This document shows, one piece after another, positions 1-36,689 of a stretch of DNA of 64,000 nucleotides. The DNA is taken from contig NW_025764892.1 in assembly GCF_003918875.1 (NCBI RefSeq), forward strand, positions 2,666,001 to 2,730,000, read 5' to 3'. The position numbers and the translations under genes are program-made. The stretch is from Haliotis rubra. Taxonomy: Eukaryota. Position 1 is the stretch's first letter. The number at the start of each line of letters is the position of its first letter. Under the pieces are notes generated by a model. It was not told where the DNA came from. It worked only from the letters and a program-made list of their open reading frames with translations, and ran no database searches.

Positions 1-2932
1 CTCTGAGTGAACTAGGTCAGCTATCATTTAGTTATATATTACAGGAGTGAAAGGTCACTGTTCAATGGTGCATTGTTAGTGTTACATGGCAGAAAATGGA
101 AGAAGGAGCTATAATTTGGGATTACCATGGCGGCAGGCTGCACGAGATAACATGGTTCAGATAAAGTGTTACACATAAACATTTCGAATTTAAACTTTCG
201 TTTGTGGCATTATCGCTACAAAAACCGCCTCGCGAAAATAATGACATGAATTACAGATTTGTCCGATAAAACGGTTTAAAGATATCGGTGTTGTTTGGGT
301 TCATTATGGCCGTTACAGCCTTTCACTGACGTGTACGTTTGTATCAGATGAATAACATGGCTGTTCTTAAACAGATGAGATCATAAGCATGGGAATGTAG
401 TTACAGATCAACATTTATGAAATAAATCTATTTCGTGGATGCAAATAAACTTGGCTCACACTGGGGAAAAGACGTGATAGTTCAAGTAACCAGTCTAATG
501 TTACTAAAATCCACGGCATGTATCGCAATAAAGCACTCCAATTACGAAAATGCAAATATGTTCACTCAAGGATGATTTTACAGCAAACATGTAATAACAG
601 GTGCTTAACAATTGGTAACTGAATCTGTGCGTTAAACACAAGAGACGCCATTTGTCTGTCCTATGTTACAAAGTGGTTCAATATGTTTGAATCAATGGCA
701 ACGAAAACTCAACAATACACGAAGTTCTTTGGGAACACGTACACAAAGACGGGAGCGGATGACAAATGGTCATACCACAACCAAATCACGACATGTTCCT
801 AACGTTTTGTTGTTGTAAAACACAAAAGTAGACAATGGGCATAAATTCAGAAGGAGCTAGCATACCTCCCTGCATACCACCTGTCATTCTCCCGTCACCG
901 ACTGACCTCGTAAGCCACAAGCAAAACAGAAGATGATATTGACATACTGATATAACGGCCCTAAGAAGGGACAGACACAAGGTGGCGGATATGTGTTAAG
1001 ACAGGCCAGGTTTATCTCTTCGGTTAGATCAGTGGTCGCTCTTTACTGAAATAGTCTAAACGGTATCCATGGACAGATATCAGAAAGATCACTGTCTGGT
1101 TGTGCTTTTAACATACCTGTGCTATAAATTAGTCAAACAAAGACGACTATGAAAGATAAGAGTTTCGTTTTATTAAATAAATACATACACATTGGTTTCT
1201 ATTTCCGTATACATGATATACATGTAATATGATATGGAGCAGTGTTGATAGGACCTAACACATTAACATTGTTTCATCAGCACTCGAAAATATTAACAAG
1301 CTTTTTGTACCTTTTACCTTGGTATTTGGGTATCTTGAATGTGTTTTCTCAAAGGTCATAAACGTATAGATATATATCTGTGGCTGTACATTACATACCA
1401 TACATCATCATAATTCACCCATCAAACGTTACCCTCAGGATGAAATACCTCGCTGTAGGTATAAAATGCACAACCATGCGTCGCGTCACCACCCATGTAG
1501 AAGTACGAGGCAGCAACATTAAAGATATATATAACTCCGGTGTCGTCGAACCATATACACTTATACTTTCGCCAAGTATCTCTCTAGACATAGTTAACAC
1601 AATGATGTATGTACATTCGTATTACAAGCAGCAGAAAAAGTCAAACTGACGTCAAAAGAGATAGAAGGCTTCCCTGAAAGCCCAGGGGACGTTCTCTCTT
1701 AATATCTGGAGACATGATCATTTTGATAAATCATGAAAACCGTTGATATAGGGATACATGCAGCGTTCCTGAACCTGAGTCTTCGATGTCCATAGTGAAA
1801 TCTAGACGTAACGAACTTAGGGGATCTTAGACTTCATTTCGTTACATTCGAAAGATCTATTAACTGCCATTGTTCGGTGATTAAAACATTATTGGAAGAT
1901 CATTAGAACTTGATTAGTTATAGCAAATATTCAATGCCCCACATCGGCCTGGACGATTTTGGTAATTGGTGAACAGAGACTTTTTTAATGGCAGCTGCAT
2001 TAGTGGAAAGCAACCAGCCCTGGTAAAATAGAGCAGTTGCCGTGACACGGTGAACCTCGTGGAGACAATTGGACACACATCTAACCGTCAATCTAACACG
2101 CTGACTTAGTTCTGTTAAGCAATATCAAAGTAGATTTCGCTCCATAGGCGCAAGTAAACTGAGGATGTGTTGAGAACGTGTTTACCCAACCATTGCCAAA
2201 CAAACGCAATTAAACCGCTGCGTTCCACATACAAAGAGGCATTGTTAAGCCACAGTACAATTAGGAACTAGCTTTACGCAACACGATAGAGACCATCGCA
2301 CGATTTTGTACCTTCCTGCCGCTAAAATTGATTTTATTTGCCGAACTGATGAGTACCGACATGCCAGTGAGAGTCATTAAGAACAATCAACCATGAAGGG
2401 TTACCTTGAAAACAGGTAATTGTGTCCTAGATGGCCCTTCGTGACGCAATAAGGAGCTGACATCTACCTTGGTCTTACGTGAGAGTGAGTTAAGAACGGC
2501 ACACCAGCGTGAAATTGACTATTAGGAAAATAAAAATGAGATGTAATCAGCTTGGTTTGCTTACAAGTTACTACCGCTGACGTTTCACCTCTGCGACAGT
2601 TATCGCGCGTAAATTATTTATACCTTTGTACTTTCAATTGAGGGGGGATTAAGTTCAAGCACTTTCAGTTGAAGGGGGACTAAGTTCAGATGTCCGAGCA
2701 AACTTAACTACGCTGTTCAAACACAATAATACGTGAACAGACAGTGATTAAATATGCAGATAGACAATAACTTGATATGTAAATAGACAAAGCCTTGATT
2801 TGTGAATAGACCTGGTCTTATATGAATAAGCAGCGAGTTTCAGAAAGTGGGCACATTTAACATATGTAACATTTGGTATTACACATTCCAAGCAAAATAA
2901 AAATAATTGTTGATGGAGCAAACTGACACGGC

Positions 2933-3102
2933 TGAGTGAGTGAGTGAGTAAAGCTATACGCCGCTCTTAGCAATATTCCAGCAATATCACGGCGGGGGAC
3001 ACCAGAAATGGGCTTCATACATTGTACCCATGTGGGGAATCGAACCTGGGTCTTCAGTGTGACGAGCGAACGCTTTAACCACTAGGCTACCCAACCACCT
3101 CC
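2933..3102 (-). mobile_element. tRNA-derived SINE, family A (full length)
   Basis: Reverse complement has A-box TAGCCTAGTGG, tRNA-Asp-like arm, B-box GGTTCGATTCC, tail GCTGGAATATTGCTAAGAGCGGCGTA and (ACTC)n; >20 similar copies in window. Confidence 0.9.
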
Positions 3103-4070
3103 GGTTCGCACTGCCCTTAACAGCTGAACATAATAATATCACGCTCTGCTAAATTAAATCATATATTACTAGCAATGTTTTCGTAATATATAAATAACAG
3201 TTAATAATGCTTAAATGTTGCTAGCAACCATACCACACGGCATATTAATGACAATAAACATTGCACGCACCGGTTTCTTGCTAAAAAATGCTATCAACCA
3301 CACCTCACAACATATTATTGAAAATAAATATGACATGACCGGTCTCTTGTTTTTATTAAAGAACAGGTGCAAATATCAGACGGTAGACATGTGACAGACG
3401 TAAGCATGATACAACGTTTCGAATGACACTAACTGCTCAGCTAAGAACAGTTGGTTATGTTGGCTATTATTCATGGCTCATTACTCTGTACACGTTAAGC
3501 CACTACAAACATGCCTTTCACATTTGTGTGTCTCTCCCACAGTTTATGAACACATGGATAGGATTATTTGAAAAGCTATAACTCCATGACGAAACGTAAT
3601 GACGTTCTTAAGTTCTACAGCTAAGTGTCAGGCGCGTCCTTGAAGCGAGTTCTAAAAGCTTTTAAAACATTATATCAGCGCTACCACTCTTCTCGTTAAG
3701 TGACATGGATGGCAGCAATTATCATGCAATCTTTCGTGGCAGAATTTCTGCTGTGTTAGCATAAACTGAAGCGTAAATGATTTCATCGACTTGTTTTGCT
3801 GGTAGTTCACTTTACGTAAGCTAAGCCCATTTGCCTTAATGGGAGCATTCTCGGATAAAAATACAAAATTGTTACCAAACTATTTGAGATAGTTAAATAA
3901 TTAAGAAAATAGTACAGGACTTGAAAATAATTATTTACAATTTCCATTGTTCTAGTTATACAAAACGTCTAATATTACTACAGAGTGAGGCAAATATTAC
4001 TTCCATGATATAGTGGTTAGTTTGCAGATAGATCCATGTACATGTATCTCATTCTGTGAAGTTTTCGCTA

Positions 4071-4277
4071 AAGTGGTAAAAGACCTGCCTTATTTAGGAT
4101 TTTCCTCCCACATAAAGCTGACGAGAGCCAGGCAAGGTAACAACAAGTACCATATTTTAACTAACACCACAGTGGTAAATGTCTATGACCTGCCTTACTT
4201 CGGGATTTCTTCCCACATTAAGCTGACACGACGTGAGAAAACTGAAATATTTCACACACTCACATACTCACTCACCA
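4071..4277 (+). mobile_element. Degraded SINE 3' remnants (family D), partly duplicated; related copy at ~41378-41445 (-)
   Basis: Two copies of GACCTGCCTTA...TTT(C/T)CTCCCACAT(A/T)AAGCTGAC followed by CTGAAATATT and an (ACTC)-like tail; same TTCCTCCCACATTAAGCTG core at 41.4 kb. Confidence 0.45.
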
Positions 4278-7200
4278 ATAAAATCAGAGACTGTGACCAA
4301 CTACACATTATATTGACGTGAACATTCACGATCCTGGTTTATACAAACTCTGTGTGCCCGAAAGTCAATATTGCATTGACCACATCTTATTAACACTCGT
4401 GTACATGCAATATTAGCCGATCCATAATTCTATGGATATTCACATGTAGAGGAATTCCTACCCAACCATGTCTGGCACTATCAAACAGGTTCCAGATCTA
4501 TTTCATCCTCTTATTAACGCCCTATCTACCTGTCCAGCGAAGGCCTAATACCGATTAATCAATACGAGATGAAACTCGTTGACCGCTGAGTGACCGCTAT
4601 GGTAATCTCACTAATCCCCTTACAAGTGTCCATTCATCATGATATAATCACTATCTAACACTACCTTAAGTCTGATCTCTCAGAATACAATGATCAAGCA
4701 TTACTTCTCATTAAAAGGTCTTCTCTTAAATTAAATCACATTGACGTATACCCATAGAACACAATCAACTGCAGTTCATATACAAAATACATGTCACTAC
4801 ATAGCAGTATGCGCGCTTAATATATTCATATTTAACGAAAAACCTAAGGGGGAGACACCATAACCTTGTCTTACACCAATTTTGTATGAAATATAACATG
4901 ACGTTTACGCAGAACATTATTGTCATAATGTAAACTGATATCAATCAATCTGAAAGAGTGCGTAACAGAATAATTCTATGGTCTGAGGCGAAATACATAA
5001 AATAGAAAGTGAACAGTGATAAAACACAAGTCTTGAAGCTAAAATAGATGGATGCCTCGGCTACCCACGTAACGAGTATTTGTCAGTACCCACACCTGAG
5101 CCCAGTATTTGCGATCCCCAATTATTCAGGGAGGTAACTGGACAGAACAGGTGCCCGACATGTGTGAGATAACGTATTGTAGTGACGTTTACCGTGACAT
5201 TTGTGCCGTTGAATGTCCGAAGACCAATTATTTTGACACTTTGTCATCGGTCGCAAGTAGACCTTGTTATTCTCAGATTAAGGCCTTTAACAGAAAGTAG
5301 CAGTCTTGGTCTTGCATCGTTTGAATTCGCAAAACATAATTGGCGCGATTTGGTGAGAAATGCAGAGCCTAAATAAAGAATGTTAAGTTGTGTGAATGGG
5401 TGATACTGGTGGTGAAGTGTTTCATGATGAATCTTCTGAAAACCTCAGAGTGTCTAGTTCACTCCAGTTGTTTTTATTGTTTAAAACAGGTCCATGACGA
5501 GAATATTGTCGCAAATCATTGACAACTATTGTGACGTCGTTCTAACAATATCATACACAGTACTCCCCTCGACTTTCTGGTTTTTTCCAAGAAACCTTTT
5601 ATGGGAAATATGAATAATAACTGAAACTAGTAAGTATAGATTAACTACCCAACGTTACAAAACTAACTCTCACCGGGCAAATAATGATCAAATTTTCATA
5701 GCCCTCCGATAATGATTGTTTCATAACACATTAATGCATGTAGAAATAACGGCATAGCCTCTTAATCCAAAAATACGGATATATTAACAGTCTTAACGAT
5801 CAGGCATACATACCAGGAAGTACCTATGGCCAAACTTATTTCACGATTTCTTGCCATTTGACATCGTGAAACAGAGAAAATACATCAGAAAAGGCTATGA
5901 AAACTCTCTCTAACCCTCGAAACCTCTGCAAGCCCTTAGATTTCAGTCTGTTGAATGACACCTTAAAGCCTAAACTATCTGTTTTCCCTTTCATGACCCA
6001 TGTTGCCAAACAAGCATAACCCTACACATACTTCCAACACCTTCACGGGTCACTCTTGACCAACACTGACCACAACACAATCGTTTCCTTAAGACTTAAC
6101 ACTGGCCTCTAATCACCTTGACCACCTTCTAGCGCTTCACAGCTTTTAGTCAAAGAAAAGTGACCAGATCGTAGGATGGCTTCTCTAGGTCTTCGTTCCA
6201 ACCCAAACATTTCCTACAAAGCGTTATGACTACTCTTCGGTGGAATTTGGCTTATTGGCTTGACTATCTGGCTTGGTAACAAGGTGGTGTTAAAGAGTTT
6301 TGGCAAAGGCCGGGCTACGTTAATCCAAGCCTAAAAGTGACTGGGTTTTGCATCAAGACACCAACATGTCTGGCATATTTCTCTAATCTGTAAAGCTACC
6401 GTTCCTTGCAGTCTGCTATGTTTCTACATGATCTTTTCAAGCTGGTTGGTGTGTCTCCGCCCGATGACTTACAAACCTGAGTAAACTCTCTTTTTTTCAC
6501 CGGAAGAAGGCGAATTTTATTCTGTTTAAGCACGTGTCCTTACTGTAAAAAATGAACATTTGGAGATTCGTGATTTATGCTTGGAAACGAGCGGTAGTTT
6601 CGTCTTCCCGTGACGACGCTGTAGTTGTGGACAGCAAACAATGACGTCGCTCTACACATGTTCAAAGGAACGTCGGCACCTATCAGCTACTGAATGGAAT
6701 ATTTCAGGGGCTATTTAGGGTCACTGCTGATCGTATATTAACTGACGGAATACACCGGAAGACCGAGATGGAGGACCAAGTAGGCGGCTTTGTACACAAC
6801 TATTTTTCAACCTCACGGGTACGATCGCGGTAACGAACGAAAATCTTAAATGTAAAACGCGAGTTATACTACAAGCATCAGATTTGTCAATTCCACATTC
6901 ACTATGTTAAAAGCGCGAAACCATTACCCAACTTCAAATCATTGACACACAATTGCTGTTTAATCTTACTACTTAAGATATTCCTCTTCAAAAGACAAAA
7001 CTGGTTATTGCCGCTGCATGGCATGTTCATAACAAAGAGAAAATAAATCTCCTCGAAAATATAAGTTACGCTTACACGTATGACGAAACGCACTGAGAAA
7101 GTACAATGTGTGTACCTATTAACCGTACATCAAACATATATCATATCAGCTGTAACACGCTAACATAAGTGTGGTGTGAGCCAAGGATATTGGCTATGCC

Positions 7201-8939
7201 CGCGGACATTGGATACTCGTTAATTTAACCCCAACCTGAATGAAAACGTTAATAAGTCTAAAATTAAGTGCAAATCCTCTGTTGCAAATTAGGTCTTTTG
7301 TCCACAGAACAAAGCCATGTTTGCACAATGCACATTCACAAATTAGAGTTCACATGTGTTGTAACAAAACAATGGATTTTTAGCCTTTTAATTACAGTAC
7401 TATAATCCCTTTAAACCTTTTATATCGCTTTACAATACGCGGATATACAGACTACTTCAGCAAATTCAGGGTTACAGTGGCATGTAAACGCTTGACAGAG
7501 TCTGGACTAGTTTTTCTCGGGCACACGCTGGGATCTGATGGGTAGTTTCAGTAAGCCCTGTCATTCAATTAAGCTCTCCCCTTTTTGATCGGCTCGTGTT
7601 GGAAACAGTTGTTCGGGTGAGGGGGTGTAGTCAAGGGGTACGGACTGAGCATCTGATATATGCATATATCCGTTTTGGCCAGGTTACGTTTTCACGCCCT
7701 CTGGGACTACTCGTAGAACACATGCGTCTGTATTTTCTTAACGCCGCTCACGTGTAACATATATTATCGTGTGCCTTGTGTTGGTTTAGGGGCAATATGT
7801 ACTCTCTTTGTATTTGTTGTAACAGCCAAGCTATGTCCATGTCAAGTTCGTATGTAGCAATCGACAGGCCACGAACATAAACAATAAAAGTATAAACTGC
7901 AACTGGCGTTATTTATGTATGGAAATCTAGTCAACTGACAGGCTTTGACCTGTTGATAGACTATACACGTATACCTAGTTACTACTGACAAATACTGTAC
8001 ATGCAAGAAGATATGTGGGTGTATGGAATGCAGTTGTCTAGTATGTACGTATATGAGCCATGAATGTATAGCTCTAATCAATGTAAAAAATGACAAGCAT
8101 TATGCATGCACTAGTATAGAGGTACCTATGCAGCATACTTATCAAATATATACCTATATATAAACACATGGCAGTGTATATATGCACATATGCTTTCACT
8201 AATGTACAATACCTATACATGGTACTTATCTGGAAAAATACTTGACCTATGCAAATATACTCCCAGTACATGTAGAAATTGACAAGCATTACACACCAAC
8301 TAATATGCATTTACCTATCCAGTGTACGTGTCTACGATAAACTAGTATATAACTTTAGCATGCGTATTACGATATACGAGGCAATTAACCTGTCTCAATA
8401 CCTGACGATTTCAGTCATGGTGTCCCATGCAGACTAGGATGCAGCAGTTGCCGTGGTATGCGATCCCGTTAGTGACAGTACTGCATACCTGACATACCTG
8501 GCTGGACGTTGCCAGTGCATTGCTTCAGTCTGTCAGGCCATTCATCATATAACCACACCGGATTTGAACTCAAATACAAGTCTTGTCCAAGGAAATACAG
8601 ACAACCGAATTGCATTCCTGAACAGTCTATTGAAGAATCGGTCTTCACATACGGCACATACTTATATTCATGGGCATGGAATAGATCAGAAGTAAGCTGT
8701 TGTTCTTCTGTACTCCACGTTGTCGTACTAAACATACGCCCACGATACTTTATCATGTCTATTTGAATAGAACTGCATAGCAGGGGTACGTCACTATTAT
8801 GGTGATCACTAGTTGTCGAATATGTTTATTCTCTTGAACATTCACTTGATGCCTTGAATGAAAGAACATTTCACTAAGCAACACCCTGGTACAGGCTGTC
8901 AGTGACGAAGGTTTATTTCAAACAAAATGTGATGCCTAC

Positions 8940-9263
8940 CTGTGGCTGACTCTGAGAGAAACGTCCATTCTGAGACGACGTTGACGACGACGAGGGTTTC
9001 CTCTGTAACGCCGTCGTCCGGACCTCCTCCATCTGTTTCTGCTGCTGCTCTCGCAACAGCTTCAACTCCTCCAGCCCTTGGGCACTAGCTTCCAACCTCG
9101 CCCTCATCCTCTCGTTGTCCGTCCGCCTGATAATGGGTACCCTGACACTGCCAGGGAGCTCACTGAGGGACCGGCTTCTCCTCATGACGGGCACCTGTCC
9201 GGGTGGGGCACCAGCCCGGGGGTTAAGATCCTTGGTTTGGTCTTTGGTCATACTTGTTGTCAT
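8940..9263 (-). CDS. First coding exon (108 codons, phase-0 donor) of a Dapper/DACT-like protein
   Basis: ATG at 9263 in context GGCGTCATGA with in-frame upstream TGA; GC-rich coding-like ORF; peptide ERMRARLEASAQGLEELKLLREQQ resembles the DACT N-terminal motif R-x-R-ERL(E/Q)A-x-LAGL-x-EL-xx-LR-x-(R/K)Q; donor CAG|GTAGGC at 8940/8939. The exon is better supported than the family call. Confidence 0.7.
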
Positions 9264-10159
9264 GACGCCCTTACTGGGTTCTGGTTCACATATGTGTGAC
9301 TGATCATACAGTCACTTCATGTGACCAATTATTTCAAAATGGTTATTGCAAGTTCCAAATGAAACGTCATCTACTGTAGGGTGAAACGTTCAAATATATC
9401 TACAGAACTCTTCGCCTCTTTACCACAAACTCCTATAATCATGTGCATTATCCAGACGTGACGGGGTGACGAACGATCAAATCATTGTGAACATCCGTTG
9501 TTACAGGAACACAAAACATGTCAATTTTTAAAAACCTGGTCTCCTTGGCAGGTGGAAGGCAGCGTCGTGTTCGGGTCCGGTTCATCAATACACAACCCCG
9601 GACTCAGATTATCACCTGACTCCTGGGACCATCTTCCTGTGCGGCTGCCAACTCTTTCCTCTTATACAACATCTGTTACATCCTCTATCGAGGTCTGTTC
9701 AGTCTCCGAGGGTTAACAAGTATCTCACAAACCACTGATAAGAATCACCGACAAATATGTACACTATGCCAGTAATTCAATCACGTCAAGATAAGCTATG
9801 ATATAATCGAACAGTCATAGACTGTTCTTTGTGAATATAGATCCAGATTAAATAATACACATACGTAGTGTTTGCCACAGACTGTCAAGACAGAGACAGG
9901 TTTATACCACTACCGTGACTTACATATGTTTATGTGCCCCCTACAATGGGTAGACACCATCACAGGCAATCACAGGCGGATACGGGGTTGGATATTCCAC
10001 GACATAAAGTTCAACCCAGCTCGTGTTTACCGCTGGGTCAGGTGAGAGAGACTGCATACATGAATCATTCCTTTTTTACCTACACACAAGCGCATGAAAT
10101 TCCTTCAACACAAAAGGCGTTCCGTTGAACCACTCCAAATGATCTCGGGTACATGAATA

Positions 10160-10490
10160 AGTCGCTTTGACGTCATAGCTGGATTTCAGTCAGTGAAAAA
10201 ATCCTTTCTTCGCATGTATGTAGTCCATTTCAGTACAGAGTATACTCACACTCCCAGCGCAATGCCTATTATTACTGTCCTTTCGAGTAAGTCAACCACA
10301 GACGTAGCTGATCAGCTGTTCTCCGCTCCTCTACCCACGTGTCGGAGGAGGGAGGCCCACTGCACAATTGCAAGCGCTACTGTTGCTAAACCCACACGCC
10401 CGTTTACTGAACGCCGTCTACAGCTTCATATCGAGACGAGTTCTGACTGCATTGGAGGACGGTATTGACACAGCGATTGGCAAACTGCAG
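10160..10490 (-). promoter_or_regulatory. Candidate promoter of the DACT-like gene
   Basis: On the minus strand two CCAAT boxes (10451-10455, 10476-10480) lie ~45 and ~70 bp upstream of an Inr-like TCAGT (10410-10406); full CRE TGACGTCA at 10168-10175; locally CpG-richer and TE-free. Confidence 0.35.
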
Positions 10491-11458
10491 CCCGCGACCG
10501 TCCTACACAACTGATGCTTAGCCGGGCACTGGAGTATGACTGGGCCTAATGTAGGTACCTCCAGCACACAACCCTGTCTCACTCCACCTTCGTTCTCGTC
10601 TTCGGCAGGACTCGCTTGGCGCTGTCTAGGCTACCTGTCAATTATTAACAACGAACCTCAATCCGGCCTATCACGTGAACTTGTTTAACAGCCACCCACT
10701 CAATATTAAATATTCGGGACATGTATTGGTAATTTAATATACTATCGATACCATAGACAGATTTTATTCACTATGGACGTTTCCAAAATAATTTTAATGA
10801 CATATTAAGTAGATACTGTAAGTAGTCGTATATCTATCTTCTCCGACCTAGGTCTGTCACAGTACAAGTTCAGACACACTATGGTGGTAGTCACATGTAG
10901 ATACCACTACAGAGATTAGATATCACAGAGTTTAGTCAAGTTTGTAATAAACAAACATCCTTAGGACCCTAGTTACCGGACCGGGCGCCATTATTACGTT
11001 CCCCTAAATACTCATTATTCAAGAAGTATCAATTTAGATATATTGATATCAATAAGTGTCTGTAAACCTACACTGTTGTGGTGTTACCTTAGTGTGTCTG
11101 TGTCTGTTGGTAATTGAACTCAAGGCATAGATACCGTCTGGGTGTTAGGTTTCCGGCGTCAGGAAGCGGTATTGTACTATAAACAGATGATCCGTTGTGG
11201 GTCGTGTGTCCTGTATACCTGTACACGAGGTCTTGGTTGGAGTAAACAGGTAGATACTGCTTTGAACCTGGCTATCTCGCACGACGAAATGTATATGAGC
11301 AATAATAATACAATAAACACACCCTCTATTGAGATGTCAAAACAACCCCCGCCTCCTCTCTCTTACCGTTGACCCCCCACCCTTTCTCTCTCTGTCTCAC
11401 TCTCCCTTCCTCTCTGCCTCTGCCTCCTCCTCTCTCCTTTCTCTCTCCCTCTATCTCC

Positions 11459-11622
11459 GGGGTCGGTGGGTAGCCTAATGGTTAAAGCGTTGGCTCGTCA
11501 CGCCGAAGACCCGGGTTCGAATCACCCACATGGGCACATTGTGTGAAGCCCATTTCTGGTGTCCCCCGCCAAGATGTTGCTGGAGTATTGCTAAAAGCGG
11601 CGTAAAACCAAACTCAGTCAGT
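11459..11622 (+). mobile_element. SINE family A inserted in a CT-rich tract
   Basis: Full head-to-tail match; 11-bp TSD CCTCTATCTCC (11448-11458 / 11623-11633). Confidence 0.9.
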
Positions 11623-13076
11623 CCTCTATCTCCCCTTTCTCTCTCTGCCTCTATCTCCCCTTTCTCTCTCTCACTGTATGTCTCTCTCCTTTTCATTCTC
11701 ATTGCTCTCCCCTTTTTCTCTCTCTGCCTATCGCCCCTTTTTCTCCCCTTCCTCTCTCTCTAGCGTCTTTCATTGTTCCCCAAGCTTGTGCTTCAGGAAT
11801 CCGCAGCTATCCACACTGGGTTAAGTTGGAACTATGTCCTTTCATATCCTGCAACCACCCCCACTGGGTTAATTTGGAAGTATATCCTTTAATATGATCA
11901 GCGATGACGCCACACGTATATACGTACAAACCAGATACCTGTCCGGCCGAGACTGTCCGCTCCAGCAACTGGGATGAATGTAGAGAGCTGTATCTACATT
12001 CCTACAGCTCGTCCTATTGAAAACAGACACAACCGAGGAAACGCCGAAATACCACGGCTAGGACCCTTGCACTCACTTACAACCACCTATTGAATAACCT
12101 TTATATTGGCGCACAACACGGGAACAATGAGCAGTTTGTTAACTTGTATTTCTTGGTGTGTACCTATCGTCCTTGTTTAATGGTAGCTTGGAATTAATAC
12201 CTCATTAATCACTTGTCGTGTGTGCGTGTTTCATACACAGCCTTGTACCTGTTGATTGTTCAGCACACAAACCTATCGCTGATTGTCAGGTAGACGGCGT
12301 TTGCATGTTACGAGCAGTGACACTTACCGCCGTTATCTATTCTCACGTATATCCAGTTGGCTTGGGAGTAGAGCGGTATACCCGAGTTACCTCCCTTACA
12401 CTGTGATTGATGGAGCTATCGACTCGCGGATCATAATTTCATTTGCGGACATATATTTTTTATCTCTTAAAACGGTTTGGGTCACGAGTATAAATTTATA
12501 GCGTTGCTTTTCTGCCCGTGGGATTCAGAATTCCTGTGGCATGAAGTCACCTAGGAATTTGATTGCACTGCAAACAGACATAGGAAAAACTGAAAGAGTA
12601 AACGAAATTATTTTTAAACCAGCTAAATTAAGTAGCTTTAGAGCGCCCAAAACCATACTTGCATAGTTAAACCTATACACATAATTAAACACGTACGAAT
12701 TCAGTTTTTAGTGATCAAATAATATTGACAAAGAACGACCACGTTCCATAATCCTTGTTTACTGTTTCATTAAGCTGAAGGAAATTCTTTTAACGATGCA
12801 ACTTTTTGTGTATGGTTAAGAATGTCAAAGAAAATATCATCTTGTCTACAGGGTTACATAGTGAGTTGAAGGTTAAAACCATTCCATCTGCTCAGGTGTT
12901 GCATATGGAACATATCCATATATATATATATGAGAGGTACCAGTGAGAGGTCAAGAGCTGATTGATGCGCGAGGAAAAATATACACAATTGACTTATTAC
13001 AATGACTCTAGTCAGAACCGATATTAAGATGAATTTATTCATGACTATAACATCTACAATCATCATAAGCTGCACT

Positions 13077-13418
13077 GGGGCGGTGGGCTAACCAAGTGGT
13101 TAAAGTGTTCGCTCGTCACGCCGAAGACCCGGGTTCGATTCCCCACATGGGCATAATGTGTGAAGTCCATACCTGGTGTCCCCGCCGTGATATTGATGGA
13201 ATATTGTTAAAGGCGGCGTAAAACTAAACCCACCCAGTCCCTCTAAGCTGCATAGGGGCGGTGGGGTAGCCTAGTGGTTAAAGCGTCCGCTCGTCACGCT
13301 GAAGACCCGGGTTCGAATCCCCACATGGGTACAATGTGTGAAGCCCATTTCAGGTGTCCAACGCCGTGATGTTACTGGAATATTGCCAGAAGCGGCGTAA
13401 AACTAAACTCAGTCAGTC
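13077..13418 (+). mobile_element. Two tandem SINE family A copies (13077-13243, 13255-13418)
   Basis: Both full length; TAAGCTGCA occurs before, between and after them. Confidence 0.9.
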
Positions 13419-17968: not shown

Positions 17969-20900
17969 TAGGCTATTTTCAGGGCATTTGGTTCAGATTC
18001 TTCCAAAAGCACCAAATTTGGCACAGAGGTAGCTTAAGTCATACTAATTCGATTCCAGACGGGCGCCAAGATGGCGGCCCCCTGTGGCGGCCATATTGGA
18101 CAAAAAACAAAATGGCCGCCACCCCGATTTAAGAATATTTTTTTCCTACGGTTGTATATGGTCATGTCACATATCAAATGAAAGATAATGAAAAGAGCTT
18201 TGCAATGATGTATACATTGATGTATTGTAACCAGTGTGACAAAAGTTATTACCAATATAAAATTTAAAGAGCTGACCGAAAACTTCAAAATATGATACAA
18301 AACCCATCAAAATTCATACAATACTTGGAATTTGAAGATATTTTCACTTTGGAAATTGTCAATTCAGTGTTCGGTTTTAAGAGGTATCATATTGTAAGTG
18401 ACTTAAAATGGAATTATGTAGAAATAATATTTATGTTTTACCTATAAAAAATATCCAGTCAGTAGTGAATCAGAGTACACCAGAAATAACAATAGTATAC
18501 ACAGAATGTATATATTGTACTTTCACATGACTGTCAGTGATAGATATAGTAACTATTTTACCTAGTTACTGTCAGTATTTGTGCATCCTCCTTCGCATTG
18601 GCAGAGGACCGTACATCGTACACCAGCACTGTTGCATTTACACCTTCCCACACAGCCCTTTTTGCAACCGCAGTGTAGGAGGATAGAACATGCTGCTGAA
18701 GCATCACTGAGGGTGGTCCATAGAGGTTGCCAGTTATGGCTGTCGTCTTTCTGCTAACCCCAATCACTGAAGTCAGGGATTTCCTGGTAAGCAATGGTTG
18801 CCTACTCCCAAAAGAAACTCGTCTGCAGAATAGATCGTGTCACATGTTGAAACAACGCAGCTTGAGTAGGCAGGAATTTTGCCAATGACCTGCTTCCAGT
18901 AGTGAAAAGGCGATGCCTTGCTTCATTCACGCGCCCTACTCCACAACTTCTGCTGCACATCAGTACAACAAATCTTTCAATCTGTTGAATGTGTCTCGAC
19001 TCAGTCACGAAGTGTTCAGGATCCTGTGTGAGAGCCACTAGTGTGTCTGTCAGGTCAGGTAGACTTGTCCAGGTTGTCCATGCAGTCTTCTTTCCACATC
19101 CAAGAATATGTGAAGTGGTGTCACAGACAGTAAGACTGTGGAAGAGGGGTAATGCCAAGGACTTTGATGTACCAAGATGAGAGTACATATCATGGATTGG
19201 GATGTATTTGCACTTTTTACCAGTTCCAAATCCGATCCAGAGCTCTGTTAGGCCTAAGGTCTCAAAGACCCTTATTGCCAAAATCACAACATTGCTGTCA
19301 ACAGTGCGAACATAGGCTGATGTGTGGCCATGCTCTGCAGCATGTCGGAGATGTAGGATGATTCTTGTGTCAGCCTCGGTATGGTTGCATGGCTGTAGTG
19401 TACCCAGGTCACACTGTCGGTTTGAAAGCACATTTTCACAGTGGGTACTCAGGAGGAGCTTTCCATCCATATCCGTTTTGGAGATCTGACTGCTGATGAA
19501 TGAAAGGAATTCCCTTTTGTTCTCCTCATTCTTGAGGAAACCACTGTTCCATTCATGTTTTGGTATCAGGGTGCCGCCATCACCAACTCTTGTTCTTGAA
19601 CCAATCCCAGGCCTTTAAAATCGTTACTCTCTGGGTAGTTATTCCATACCGCATCAATCCGTTGGGCTCCATTCTTCATCTGGGCCTCAAGATATGGAAT
19701 GACTTGAAGGGACACATAGTCAGAGAATGGTTTTGCTACTGTTGAGCGCAGAATGTGTATGCTGCCATATCCAAAACCTCGACTGTTGCTAGTTTTGGAG
19801 CAGTTGTACGGCCAGTTGGTGCATTGATACAGTCCAGTATGTCTGACTTTGTTCCAAATCTCAGTGACCCTCTGTCAACTAGGCTTGGTGGTTCCTTTTG
19901 ATTTTCATACATGAAAAAGTCGGCCAAGTCCGCGTCTGGGCGGGACTGCAAAGAAAGGAAGAGCTGTGTCACCAATATCATGTTTTGTTTCTGAATACCA
20001 ACATCCTTAGGTTCTTTTCTCCTTGGGTCAGGTCGATTTGCAAAGGTCAGCATGTTATTTCTTTTGATTGGATCTGTTACAGGCACAGATAGCTTCACCA
20101 GTCTCTCTTGGACATAATCTGCATGCAGGGCTTTCCCAGCTTCAGAGATTTGTAACAGACTGTTCACGACGGACGGCTCCATGACAGTTTGGGTATCCAG
20201 AGCAACAAGTGTACATGTCTTTTTGAAATTTGACTTGTAAATGATGTCCTTCCTCATGATGAGCTGTTGCCTGGGGTGAAAGGTCATGTGTTGATTCAAA
20301 CTCCTTTACCATCTGCACACAGTCTGATCCTGCAAGCATATAAAGGGTAAGTGCTTCAGGATTCTCATAAAGACTTGGTCTTGGTCCTTGGCCGTAAGAC
20401 TGAACTTCTTGGATGATTTCTGAACGACATTGCCCTTCATAAATTCATCATGTATCTCAGGGTGATTCTTGCTAAGTTCAACCATGTCACGTACATATAC
20501 TGGAAGCCAACGAGCATAGTTTGTGTGGTCCAATGCATGAAACCAACCACAAAGTTCGTCACATGATTGTACATAAAGTAGGAAGTCTCCTTCCCTCAAG
20601 GACCTCACAAAACGAGCCATGAGCAGTTCTAGTTCAGTGATAGTAACCAGTATTTGAACTGTGGGAAACTTTGAGAACGTTGATCCCACATGTTGAAGGA
20701 TTCCGGTGGACCCATGACACCCTTGGATTATTCAGAGTATGCATTCTGCTTGAGGATATTCAGCGATATGAGGGAAACCTGGTGGGCATATCTTGTGCGC
20801 TTGATGTGATGCTCATGGAGGGTTGACTTAGCTCGAACAGATGTGAGGATCTCTGCTTGAGTTAGTACTGTTGCCCACCCTGAGACACGTAGCAGCTTCC

Positions 20901-22002
20901 CTATCATTAGATGCATCTTGTCTTCGATATGCAATGCACCCATCATAGAAACAAGCTTGCCTTCTCCGTAAGCATCTGTGAACTGCCATTGGAGGAGTTT
21001 TATAATGGCATATAGTGGCTGATCTGCTCCAAGTACTGTGGTCTGGCCCGGGTTTAAGAACCCGCACAGACAAATCCATAGCATGTTTCATAGAAGATGC
21101 AGATGCTGCTTTATCCGAGAAGAAAGAATATATACCAATCTCAGCTGGAGGTTTCACAGATCTGTCACTTGCAAGAGACGAGTTGTACCTTACCCAGGTG
21201 ATGATGTCACCCTCTTCTACTGGACCCTTGTTCAATACCACTGCCATGCCTGATCCTTATCCATTGAATCTTCTACAAGGTGACTTGGTCGGACTTGGTT
21301 TGTAGTAGACTTTGGAGCATAGACATCTGTCTCAGAGAGTTCTACTGGTTGTTGAATCGTATAAAAGTCCGGCAACTTTGGAGGGGTTGTGTCTATTGGA
21401 TCCTGTTTTATCGGAGCATGCTTTACTCCCATATTCTCATTTGATAGATGATTGGTCACACTGAGTGCATAGCCATGAAATTCTTCTTGTGAGAAGTTTC
21501 CTTGTGCTTTGCTGTCAAGAATATCCACATTCTGTGTAGTGAACCATATTATATTTTTTTTCTAAAATGGCATTTTCTACATAAATCGATAAGAAACTAT
21601 AAAAAAAACATGTTCTTAGAAAAAGAAAGAGGATATATTTTGTATTTCTTCGTTTGTTTATTGACATTTTGATGTTTTTGGTCCACCCTCTAGATCTTAA
21701 TTTTCATCTAACTTCTTTAATATCATTCACACAAAGTTTATTTATATATCCCTGTAAAGCTCTTTTTATTGTCTTTCATTTGATATACAACATGATTATG
21801 TACAATTTATGACAATTTATGACTAAATTTTTTCTTAAATCGGGGTGGCGGCCATTTTGTTTTTTGTCCAATATGGCCGCCACAGGGGGCCGCCATCTTG
21901 GCGCCCGTCAGAAATAAGCTTAGTATGTCTTAAGCTACCTCTGTGCCAAATTTGGTGCTTTTGGAAGAATCTGAACCAAAATATCCCTATGCCCCCTGAC
22001 TA
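17969..22002 (-). mobile_element. Academ (AcademX-type) DNA transposon, internally deleted and decayed
   Basis: Long TIRs (core 17987-18134 / 21835-21980, weaker to ~230 bp), TAG...CTA termini, internal transposase + XPG/PIN nuclease + Cys-rich remnants; TSD not cleanly resolved, so the left end is approximate. Confidence 0.8.
18562..21545 (-). pseudogene. Frameshifted Academ transposase-XPG nuclease-Cys8/CXC polyprotein
   Basis: Collinear fragments FTTQNVDILD..FHG, ADQPLYA, MMGALHIE, DHTNYARWLP, ENQKEPPSL, CNHTEADTRIILH, VRTVDSNV, CDTTS..GKKTAW, and (my translation) CGCKKGCVGRCKCNSAGVRCTVLCQCEGGC; many stops and frameshifts; N-terminus missing. Confidence 0.85.
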
Positions 22003-23536: not shown

Positions 23537-24331
23537 AATCCAGTGGTTGACGATCCAGGAGCAGACAATCCAGTGGTTGACGATCCAGTAGCAGACAATC
23601 AAGTGGTTGACGATCCAGTAGCAGACAATCCAGTGGTTGACGATCCAGTTGCAGACAATCCAGTGGTTGACGATCCAGTAGCAGACAATCCAGTGGTTGA
23701 CGATCCAGTAGCAGACAATCCAGTGGTTGACGATCCAGTAGCAGACAATCCAGTGGTTGACGATCCAGTAGCAGACAATCCAGTGGTTGACGATCCAATT
23801 GCAGACAATCCAGTGGTTGACGATCCAGTAGCAGACAATCCAGTGGTTGACGATCCAGTAGCAGACAATCCAGTGGTTGACGATCCAGTAGCAGACAATC
23901 CAGTGGTTGACGATCCAGTTGCAGACAATCCAGTGGTTGACGATCCAGTAGCAGACAATCCAGTGGTTGACGATCCAGTAGCAGACAATCCAGTGGTTGA
24001 CGATCCAGTAGCAGACAATCCAGTGGTTGACGATCCAGTTGCAGACAATCCAGTGGTTGACGATCCAGTAGCAGACAATCCAGTGCTTGACGATCCAGTT
24101 GCAGACAATCCAGTGCTTGACGATCCAGTTGCAGACAATCCAGTGCTTGACGATCCAGTAGCAGACAATCCAGTGGTTGACGATCCAGTAGCAGACAATC
24201 CAGTGGTTGACGATCCAGTTGCAGACAATCCAGTGGTTGACGATCCAGTAGCAGACAATCCAGTGGTTGACGATCCAGTAGCAGACAATCCAGTGGTTGA
24301 CGATCCAGTTGCAGACAATCCAGTGGATGAC
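23537..24331. repeat. 30-bp minisatellite (~26.5 units) expanded inside a family B retroposon
   Basis: Unit AATCCAGTGGTTGACGATCCAGTAGCAGAC, itself two related 15-mers; the array runs directly into family B sequence (CATCATGAGTATCGATCTACG). Confidence 0.95.
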
Positions 24332-35750: not shown

Positions 35751-36052
35751 CCAACAACCCCTAAGGCAACATATGTCAACCTAAGGCAGCCAATGTCGTA
35801 TGAGGTGGCAACATGCATGGAGCGGTCATTCTTGCAGTCTTGGTTGATTCCTGGTTTGACGGTTCCAGGCGGGATCATTTACATCCATCATGCAAATGGA
35901 ATAATTCTAGACGCGACATAAAAACCAAATCAGCCACCCCTCATCGTTGTCTTTCCGCCGAGAATGGGATGTGTTTGGTAAAGCTCCTAACACGATAATT
36001 ACATGAAGTTCTAGACCATTTGTGTGAATCGATGTCGTCCACAGGTTAACAG

Positions 36053-36289
36053 NNNNNNNNNNNNNNNNNNNNNNNNNNNNNNNNNNNNNNNNNNNNNNNN
36101 NNNNNNNNNNNNNNNNNNNNNNNNNNNNNNNNNNNNNNNNNNNNNNNNNNNNNNNNNNNNNNNNNNNNNNNNNNNNNNNNNNNNNNNNNNNNNNNNNNNN
36201 NNNNNNNNNNNNNNNNNNNNNNNNNNNNNNNNNNNNNNNNNNNNNNNNNNNNNNNNNNNNNNNNNNNNNNNNNNNNNNNNNNNNNNNNN
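36053..36289. other. Assembly gap (237 N)
   Basis: Run of N. Confidence 1.
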
Positions 36290-36689
36290 TTATTCTGAAG
36301 ATATATATTATCATTCAATTACAAACGAGCATGGACAATATAGAAAACAATATACATATGTACAAGTAAAACGAGTTATAATTGAAACATATCAATCATA
36401 GCAAAGCAACAAAGGTTGTCTGATGGAATACACAAAATGCAAATGTGATTATAATGTGAGTCCAGGTTTGAATCTCCATACATTCAATCGGGTAAGTATC
36501 ACTTTAAAACAGGAACGACAACATGTCGTGTTCGTCCAGCATTTCAAATATGACATAGGTTTCAACATCTAGGTGATCTATTAAATAAGAAAACAATCTG
36601 TTTCTGCTTTGCAGAAGTTTCTCACAGTGCAATAGCACATGATAAAGTGAGCTACTGAACTTGTACAAGCCCTGAAAACTCGTTTGTTC

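Follow-up and report, generated by a model that had tools for sequence, protein, structure and literature searches.

The minus strand of the window (the whole 64,000-nucleotide stretch that was analysed) carries at 9263→8940 a coding exon of 324 nt that is real, expressed and spliced at 8940. The protein begun by this exon is, as judged from its sequence, probably a distant, zipper-less relative of chordate Dact/Dapper by descent. Dact/Dapper is an adaptor of the Wnt pathway that binds Dishevelled and modulates Wnt, planar-cell-polarity or TGF-beta signalling. Schubert et al. (2014; PMC4236578) called it chordate-specific and "a chordate innovation", and the chordate-specific label was still current in 2025 (Nat Commun; PMC11897371). 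The searches of Schubert et al. (2014; PMC4236578) included Aplysia, and no dact was reported outside chordates. From the chordate-only status of Dact it has been argued that new regulators were recruited in vertebrates, adapting planar-cell-polarity signalling for convergent extension.

Results

Exon 1 and Its Expression

The coding part of exon 1 (8940..9263, minus strand) consisted of 108 codons, from an ATG at 9263 to a terminal CAG codon at 8940, and ended at a phase-0 boundary; it was delimited by its sequence, by the match to the Haliotis asinina protein and by contig breakpoints. An in-frame TGA was present 51 nt 5' of the ATG (start context GTCATGA), and the 3' end of the open reading frame (ORF), ...CCACAG, was followed by GTAGGC (CAG|GTAGGC boundary). 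The splice donor of intron 1 (8930..8939, minus strand; CAG|GTAGGCATCA) was placed by sequence, by the donor of a related locus (L001), by the joint of an H. rubra isoform and by contig breakpoints. The peptide RRSRSLS, which the original prediction had placed upstream of a quoted helix peptide, was present at residues 28-34, and the helix peptide (ERMRARLEASAQGLEELKLLREQQQ) occupied residues 51-75 of the ORF.

Transcript evidence was obtained by comparing contigs from four public runs with positions 7400-13300 of the window. The RNA-like runs X1 and X3 derived from a close relative (about 98% identical to the window), and X22 was a genomic run. The match of X3 contig 25 (6,160 nt) to the window was limited to 8940-10427, with the other 4,666 nt mapping elsewhere, and that of X1 contig 1 (670 nt) was limited to 8940-9359, with the other 250 nt mapping elsewhere. 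Depth over 7400-8778 was zero in both RNA runs, and X22 was present in every bin. From the contig breaks at 8940, and from zero intron depth against full genomic coverage, it follows that splicing of the transcripts uses precisely the predicted donor; the splicing predicted at 8940 was thus borne out by RNA contigs from two runs of a close relative.

The RNA contigs placed an uninterrupted 5' leader of approximately 1.2 kb in the same exon (9264..10461, minus strand). Pieces from X1 extended to 10461, and RNA depth was absent from 10552 up to a high-copy repeat at 11340. As the leader was uninterrupted upstream to about 10,430-10,460, the ORF is the coding end of a first exon of approximately 1.5 kb; the ATG, ORF and donor of the originally proposed "clean ATG-to-donor exon" therefore stood, but not its extent, which had omitted this leader. 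The leader contained 28 upstream ATGs, all in short upstream ORFs (1-45 codons) that stopped before the main ATG, which hints at translational control; alternatively, some unspliced RNA may have been assembled into the leader.

Intron 1 and the Remainder of the Gene

Residues 1-110 of the 710-aa H. asinina orthologue mapped to the window, and residues 110-710 had no match anywhere in it. No downstream exons were found by blastn and translated comparison in window 1-8939 or in 10 kb of L001. Sequence comparisons thus left 1..8939 (minus strand) as the start of intron 1, continuing past the window and holding no further exon of the gene. The absence of the remainder of the orthologue from the window implies that intron 1 is longer than 8.9 kb, in agreement with what had been anticipated.

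In the ERZ25071447 contig the gene consisted of two coding exons with a phase-0 intron between them: the remaining protein was encoded by one large exon on the same strand, after an intron of 34.6 kb, with an acceptor reading ...tatttcag|AATTTACAA (NLQRRMS...). Isoform X2 of H. rubra LOC124260342 (P0044) had another first exon (MFRYEAEIR), joined at ...|LNQRRMS; the isoform joint at the same point confirms the exon boundary. P0044 was without the entire N-terminal lead-in and helix of exon 1, and may reflect an alternative promoter making a helix-less protein.

Conservation and Distribution

The exon was 96-98% identical to residues 1-110 of Haliotis models. The best profile match was H. asinina XP_067678156.1 (710 aa, "uncharacterized"), residues 1-110 of which aligned with window 9263-8937 at 96% identity, and identity to H. 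cracherodii was 97% over the exon. Near-identity to XP_067678156.1 identifies the host as an abalone (Haliotis), consistent with the gastropod that had been suspected.

A word search located this exon in another gastropod-like genome as well (ENA ERZ25071447 ctg87245; locus L001). The L001 frame opened MT.DMTKE... and closed CAACAG|GTTAGT, and both the ATG and the donor were conserved relative to the window. Non-repeat DNA common to the two loci was limited to the exon core (75% identity over 136 nt), and translated comparison of the window with L001 detected nothing beyond it. Residues 25-76 (9036..9191, minus strand), which form this sole stretch of conserved DNA, were under strong purifying selection (pN 0.12; pS 0.84, saturated), and pN was 0.50 outside the core.

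An exhaustive profile search built on the two-species exon alignment returned 35 matches, every one with the exon module, and no chordate Dact at E ≤ 1e-3. Named family members were all gastropods or bivalves, and all were uncharacterized, hypothetical or spuriously named. Several relatives were complete ORFs on run contigs of 2-4 kb, which is mRNA length, with the module joined to the remainder of the protein. The names "LIM domain-containing protein A-like" (Gigantopelta aegis XP_041357065.1, P0004) and "CUPID domain-containing" (P0015) were unsupported by Pfam. The P0004 model was without the C-terminal T-x-V end of the family and the related ORF P0046 had it, so the 3' end of the Gigantopelta model is probably mis-modelled. 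The word "Dapper" in a bivalve paper was the name of an author.

The two weakest matches in the exhaustive search (P0035 and P0036) were exon-like ORFs without the LPG signature, at loci L003 (GCA_013332895.1), L004 and L005 (GCA_022702835.1 and GCA_022702875.1) and L006 (SRR13427716). The helices of these ORFs (ARIEATAAGLKELDMLRKAQ and KLEASVAGLEELAILRENQ) look even nearer to chordate motif 1, and their sources may be bridging taxa.

Architecture and Predicted Structure

Family alignments resolved the exon-1 module into an RSRSL..LPG..RVP lead-in followed by one helix. The lead-in (RRSRSLSELPGSVRVPIIRR, residues 28-47; 9123..9182, minus strand) was basic, Ser-rich and disordered, with no regular structure predicted, and its R29, S30, S32, L36, P37, G38, R41 and V42 were invariant or nearly so across the family. 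AlphaFold2, run with a 25-sequence alignment, predicted a single long helix at residues 51-87 (9003..9113, minus strand; pLDDT 88-97 over about 51-80) and no regular structure besides it. The helix had no regular Leu heptad beyond L57/L64.

The modules after exon 1 were, in order, S.SL.SI.EE, K..SW..LL, RS.SF, LRRASIQCEAV..., (F/Y)P(S/G)PLHAV..QYGSS, and DEGY.T.DS with Ser runs; P313, P315, A318 and V319 of the PLHAV block were invariant in the family. Of 20 full-length models, 19 had a C-terminus of the class-I PDZ-ligand form [QE]-T-x-[VL].

The protein (approximately 710 residues, mostly disordered and Ser-rich) is best described as an adaptor with short linear motifs. Two putative phosphorylation sites are of basophilic-kinase type, RSRSL and LRRAS, the latter Kemptide-like and of PKA type. 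The RSRSL..LPG..RVP lead-in would act as a basophilic-kinase or 14-3-3-type site, and the protein is most likely a phospho-regulated adaptor. The class-I tail would dock to a PDZ protein, and the helix of approximately 37 residues would serve self-association or partner binding. By analogy with Dact the partner may be Dishevelled, and the protein may take part in Wnt or planar-cell-polarity signalling. A KQT[AS]V tail would fit non-Dishevelled PDZ domains as well as that of Dishevelled.

Motifs Matching Dact

The Dact queries were the motif peptides that Schubert et al. (2014; PMC4236578) list for chordates in their Additional file 9. The family hidden Markov model (HMM) was built from 18 full-length molluscan proteins only, and controls were 3,000-5,000 composition-preserving shuffles and 177,635 distinct PDB sequences. 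Significance for Dact was accordingly that of short motif instances and synthetic embedding, not of full Dact sequences.

Chordate motif 1, with the consensus ER.R.(RE)RLEA.LAGL.EL..LR.RQE, aligned with residues 51-75 (9039-9113, minus strand). On the family HMM it matched positions 50-75 (23.5 bits for lamprey dactB, 13.3 for amphioxus and 12.7 for lamprey C/D), with the best of 3,000 motif 1 shuffles at no more than 7.5 bits. On the exon-module profile it scored 25-30 bits for Dact1 (top 29.6), 26.5 for lamprey B, 22.8 for dact4r, 21.6 for Dact3, 21.4 for lamprey C/D and 17.5 for amphioxus. Lamprey dactA was the sole failing version (3.6 bits on the family HMM and 6.5 on the exon-module profile). 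The likeness of the helix to the start of Dact, on which the original prediction had been built, was therefore sustained, most chordate versions scoring 17-30 bits where the best natural PDB protein reached 13.9 bits; one designed protein in the PDB scored 19.1. The family profile had no match at E ≤ 10 among the 177,635 PDB sequences.

The core of motif 4b was a further Dact hallmark, (Y/F)P(S/G)PLHAV..Q, beyond those that had been predicted. YPSPLHAVALQ aligned as nfPgPLHAVtlQ with HMM positions 313-324 (9.8-11.1 bits), a score reached by 0 of 3,000-5,000 shuffles; some printed entries read PSPPLHAVA, and the unambiguous Dact2/4 form was used, the single-P Dact1 form being an assumption. In the full motif 4b pattern, ...YQCDLVS...VY.YPSPLHAVA.QSP.F, the N-terminal YQCDLVS half was unmatched (no better than shuffles).

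When motif pairs were embedded in random chains of 800 residues, with E scaled to a search of 20,000 proteins, E was 1.4e-5 for the lamprey-B type and 5e-5 for the Dact1 type, and marginal for both lamprey C/D (0.23) and amphioxus (0.85).

Motifs Not Matching Dact

Pfam Dapper (PF15268), the HMMER check proposed at the outset, had no match at E ≤ 10 either for the 108-aa exon or for 16 full-length relatives, the HMMER filters hiding any Pfam match with an E value greater than roughly 0.1-0.3. The leucine zipper and the SRPSSGFY motif, both expected in the full protein, were not found in it: the zipper (LLLRKQL...) and the small zipper exons were absent, exon 1 being directly followed by the large exon, and motifs 2d-f (DSRPSS, GFYELSDG, SLSNS.NSVFSE) scored no better than shuffles. 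Motifs 4a, 9 and the start of 11d were likewise no better than shuffles on the mollusc HMM. The DEGY.T.DS block and its Ser runs lie at the position equivalent to the Vangl-binding motifs 11d-f (SDSEYSAEC...FGDSESS...), the start of 11d not being above shuffles.

Where an MTTV tail had been anticipated, the C-terminus is of class-I PDZ type and reads QTEV, and the basic stretch that precedes MTTV (11g, KIKASH.LKKKI) was unmatched (not above shuffles). The tail consensus was KQT[AS]V in molluscs and KLMTTV in Dact.

Several likenesses noted by eye failed the shuffle test and were discarded (IQCEAV with YQCDLV, SDDGYSTCDS with SDSEYSAEC, RSQSFS with motifs 4a and 9, and SSLASI.EE with 2f). Word-based searches returned close molluscan relatives only and were unable to reach Dact; in the last of them, 8,000 low-complexity candidates crowded out even members of the query alignment itself. 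Searching PDB sequences with the exon gave noise only (mS26, E 0.36), and Rfam had no matches on the window.

Other Features of the Window

A very high-copy repeat occurred twice a short way upstream of the first exon (11340-11733 and 12916-13300), the copies lying about 1.6 kb from each other. Its summed contig depth was 1e6-1e7 in DNA runs, and it was abundant in RNA runs too. Hundreds of joints were observed between copies, the loose ends of which contain GGTTCGATTC (tRNA T-arm-like), and the repeat is probably a tRNA-derived SINE. A 30-nt minisatellite occupied 23537-24331 (26.5 copies, 97% matches), and ORFs of 286 and 260 aa on both strands of this interval were rejected as repeat artefacts. 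On the minus strand, 18802-20299 and 20828-21247 held ORFs (222, 187 and 139 aa) that had no counterpart in Pfam, the first of them containing a ...NHTEADTRIILH... stretch; a decayed mobile element may have left these ORFs behind. A run of N (assembly gap or masked) was located at ~35.9-36.3 kb, inside an apparent ORF (35907-36314).

Discussion

Origin of the Family

Two specific motif matches in the same order, a motif 1 encoded by exon 1 and a T-x-V/L end make a common Dact-like ancestor the most likely source of the likeness. The failed Pfam comparison and the missing zipper and 2d-f motifs mean that the protein is not classifiable as a Dact member by current definitions. The original prediction had left open whether the exon belonged to a DACT orthologue or to a new family reusing the motif; the evidence points to a distant relative of Dact rather than to pure reuse, but the Pfam, zipper and SRPSSGFY tests fail.

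A scaffold family restricted to molluscs or lophotrochozoans, with a likeness to Dact due to chance or to convergence on the same conserved binding partners, is a serious alternative, though the less likely one. It would account for the negative Pfam Dapper result, for a match of two short motifs only with the defining zipper and 2d-f region missing, for an RSRSL..LPG..RVP lead-in without counterpart among published Dact motifs, for a KQT[AS]V tail that differs from KLMTTV, and for documentation of the family in molluscs only. It fits less well with two independent motifs in the right blocks and in the right order, whose scores were unreached by shuffles or by natural PDB sequences (177,635 searched). 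The motif 4b match, besides, is a 7-mer shared almost exactly, within the internal block that each family conserves best; both families encode an N-terminal motif 1 in exon 1; and convergence is an unlikely route to about 60-70% identity across 25 helix residues.

Membership of another known helical family is highly improbable. It is suggested by database names, UniRef naming the Elysia marginata orthologue for a CUPID domain and the Gigantopelta model being named for a LIM domain, but at a cutoff as loose as E ≤ 10 the Pfam scan of those proteins gave neither CUPID nor LIM nor any further domain, and the exhaustive exon-profile search gave family members only. CUPID membership of the E. marginata protein (P0015) was rejected on the same scan, which had no CUPID match at E ≤ 10. 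A chance ORF, or non-coding sequence merely resembling an exon, has short length and nothing else in its favour and is refuted with near certainty by spliced transcript contigs that break exactly at the donor and by a core pN of 0.12 against a pS of 0.84, annotated orthologues existing and the ATG and donor being kept in a divergent gastropod.

The family is documented from molluscs only, and the balance tilts slightly towards a proto-Dact in the protostome-deuterostome ancestor, with Dact no chordate innovation. Such a proto-Dact would have combined a motif-1 helix at its N-terminus with a PSPLHAV block, a Ser-rich body and a tail that binds PDZ domains; chordates would have added the leucine zipper and the 2d-f and 11a-f motifs later.

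A mollusc-wide protein with the Dact helix, the PSPLHAV core and a PDZ-type tail would, if a true relative, place the origin of the family at least as early as the bilaterian ancestor. A minimal ancestral Dact architecture would then be defined, and spiralian development would gain a candidate Dishevelled adaptor that can be tested. A convergent likeness would still leave a conserved and expressed scaffold family, wholly uncharacterised, with clear short linear motifs.

Comparison With Known Systems

The same gene is represented in RefSeq/GenBank by models of H. asinina (XP_067678156.1), H. cracherodii, H. rubra (LOC124260342), Biomphalaria (LOC106058390), Mizuhopecten (LOC110452529) and others, with no link to Dact in any label.

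The mollusc family differs from Dact in the lack of a Pfam Dapper match, of the leucine zipper and of motifs 2a-f (DSRPSS-GFYELSD-SLSNS...); motifs 2a-f, with the zipper and DSRPSS-GFYELSD, are the most conserved region of Dact and were undetectable in the mollusc family. Motifs 4a, 5, 7-10 and 11a-f of Dact were undetectable as well, and the basic KIKASH.LKKKI stretch before the tail is a Dact feature absent from the mollusc family. Conversely, the RSRSL..LPG..RVP lead-in and the LRRASIQCE block are mollusc-family features without counterpart in the published list of Dact motifs. Coding exons number two in the mollusc family (in the related contig), four in vertebrate Dact and three in amphioxus.

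Dact/Dapper/Frodo proteins (Dact1-4, lamprey dactA-D and amphioxus dact) and the mollusc family both have an N-terminal helix encoded by exon 1 (ER.R..RLEA...GL.EL..LR..Q), an internal (Y/F)P(S/G)PLHAV..Q core, and a long, Ser-rich, disordered body mainly from one large last exon. Both also finish in T-x-V/L, as MTTV in vertebrates, STDV and TTTV in lamprey, VTEL in amphioxus, and QTEV, QTAV and ETSL in molluscs.
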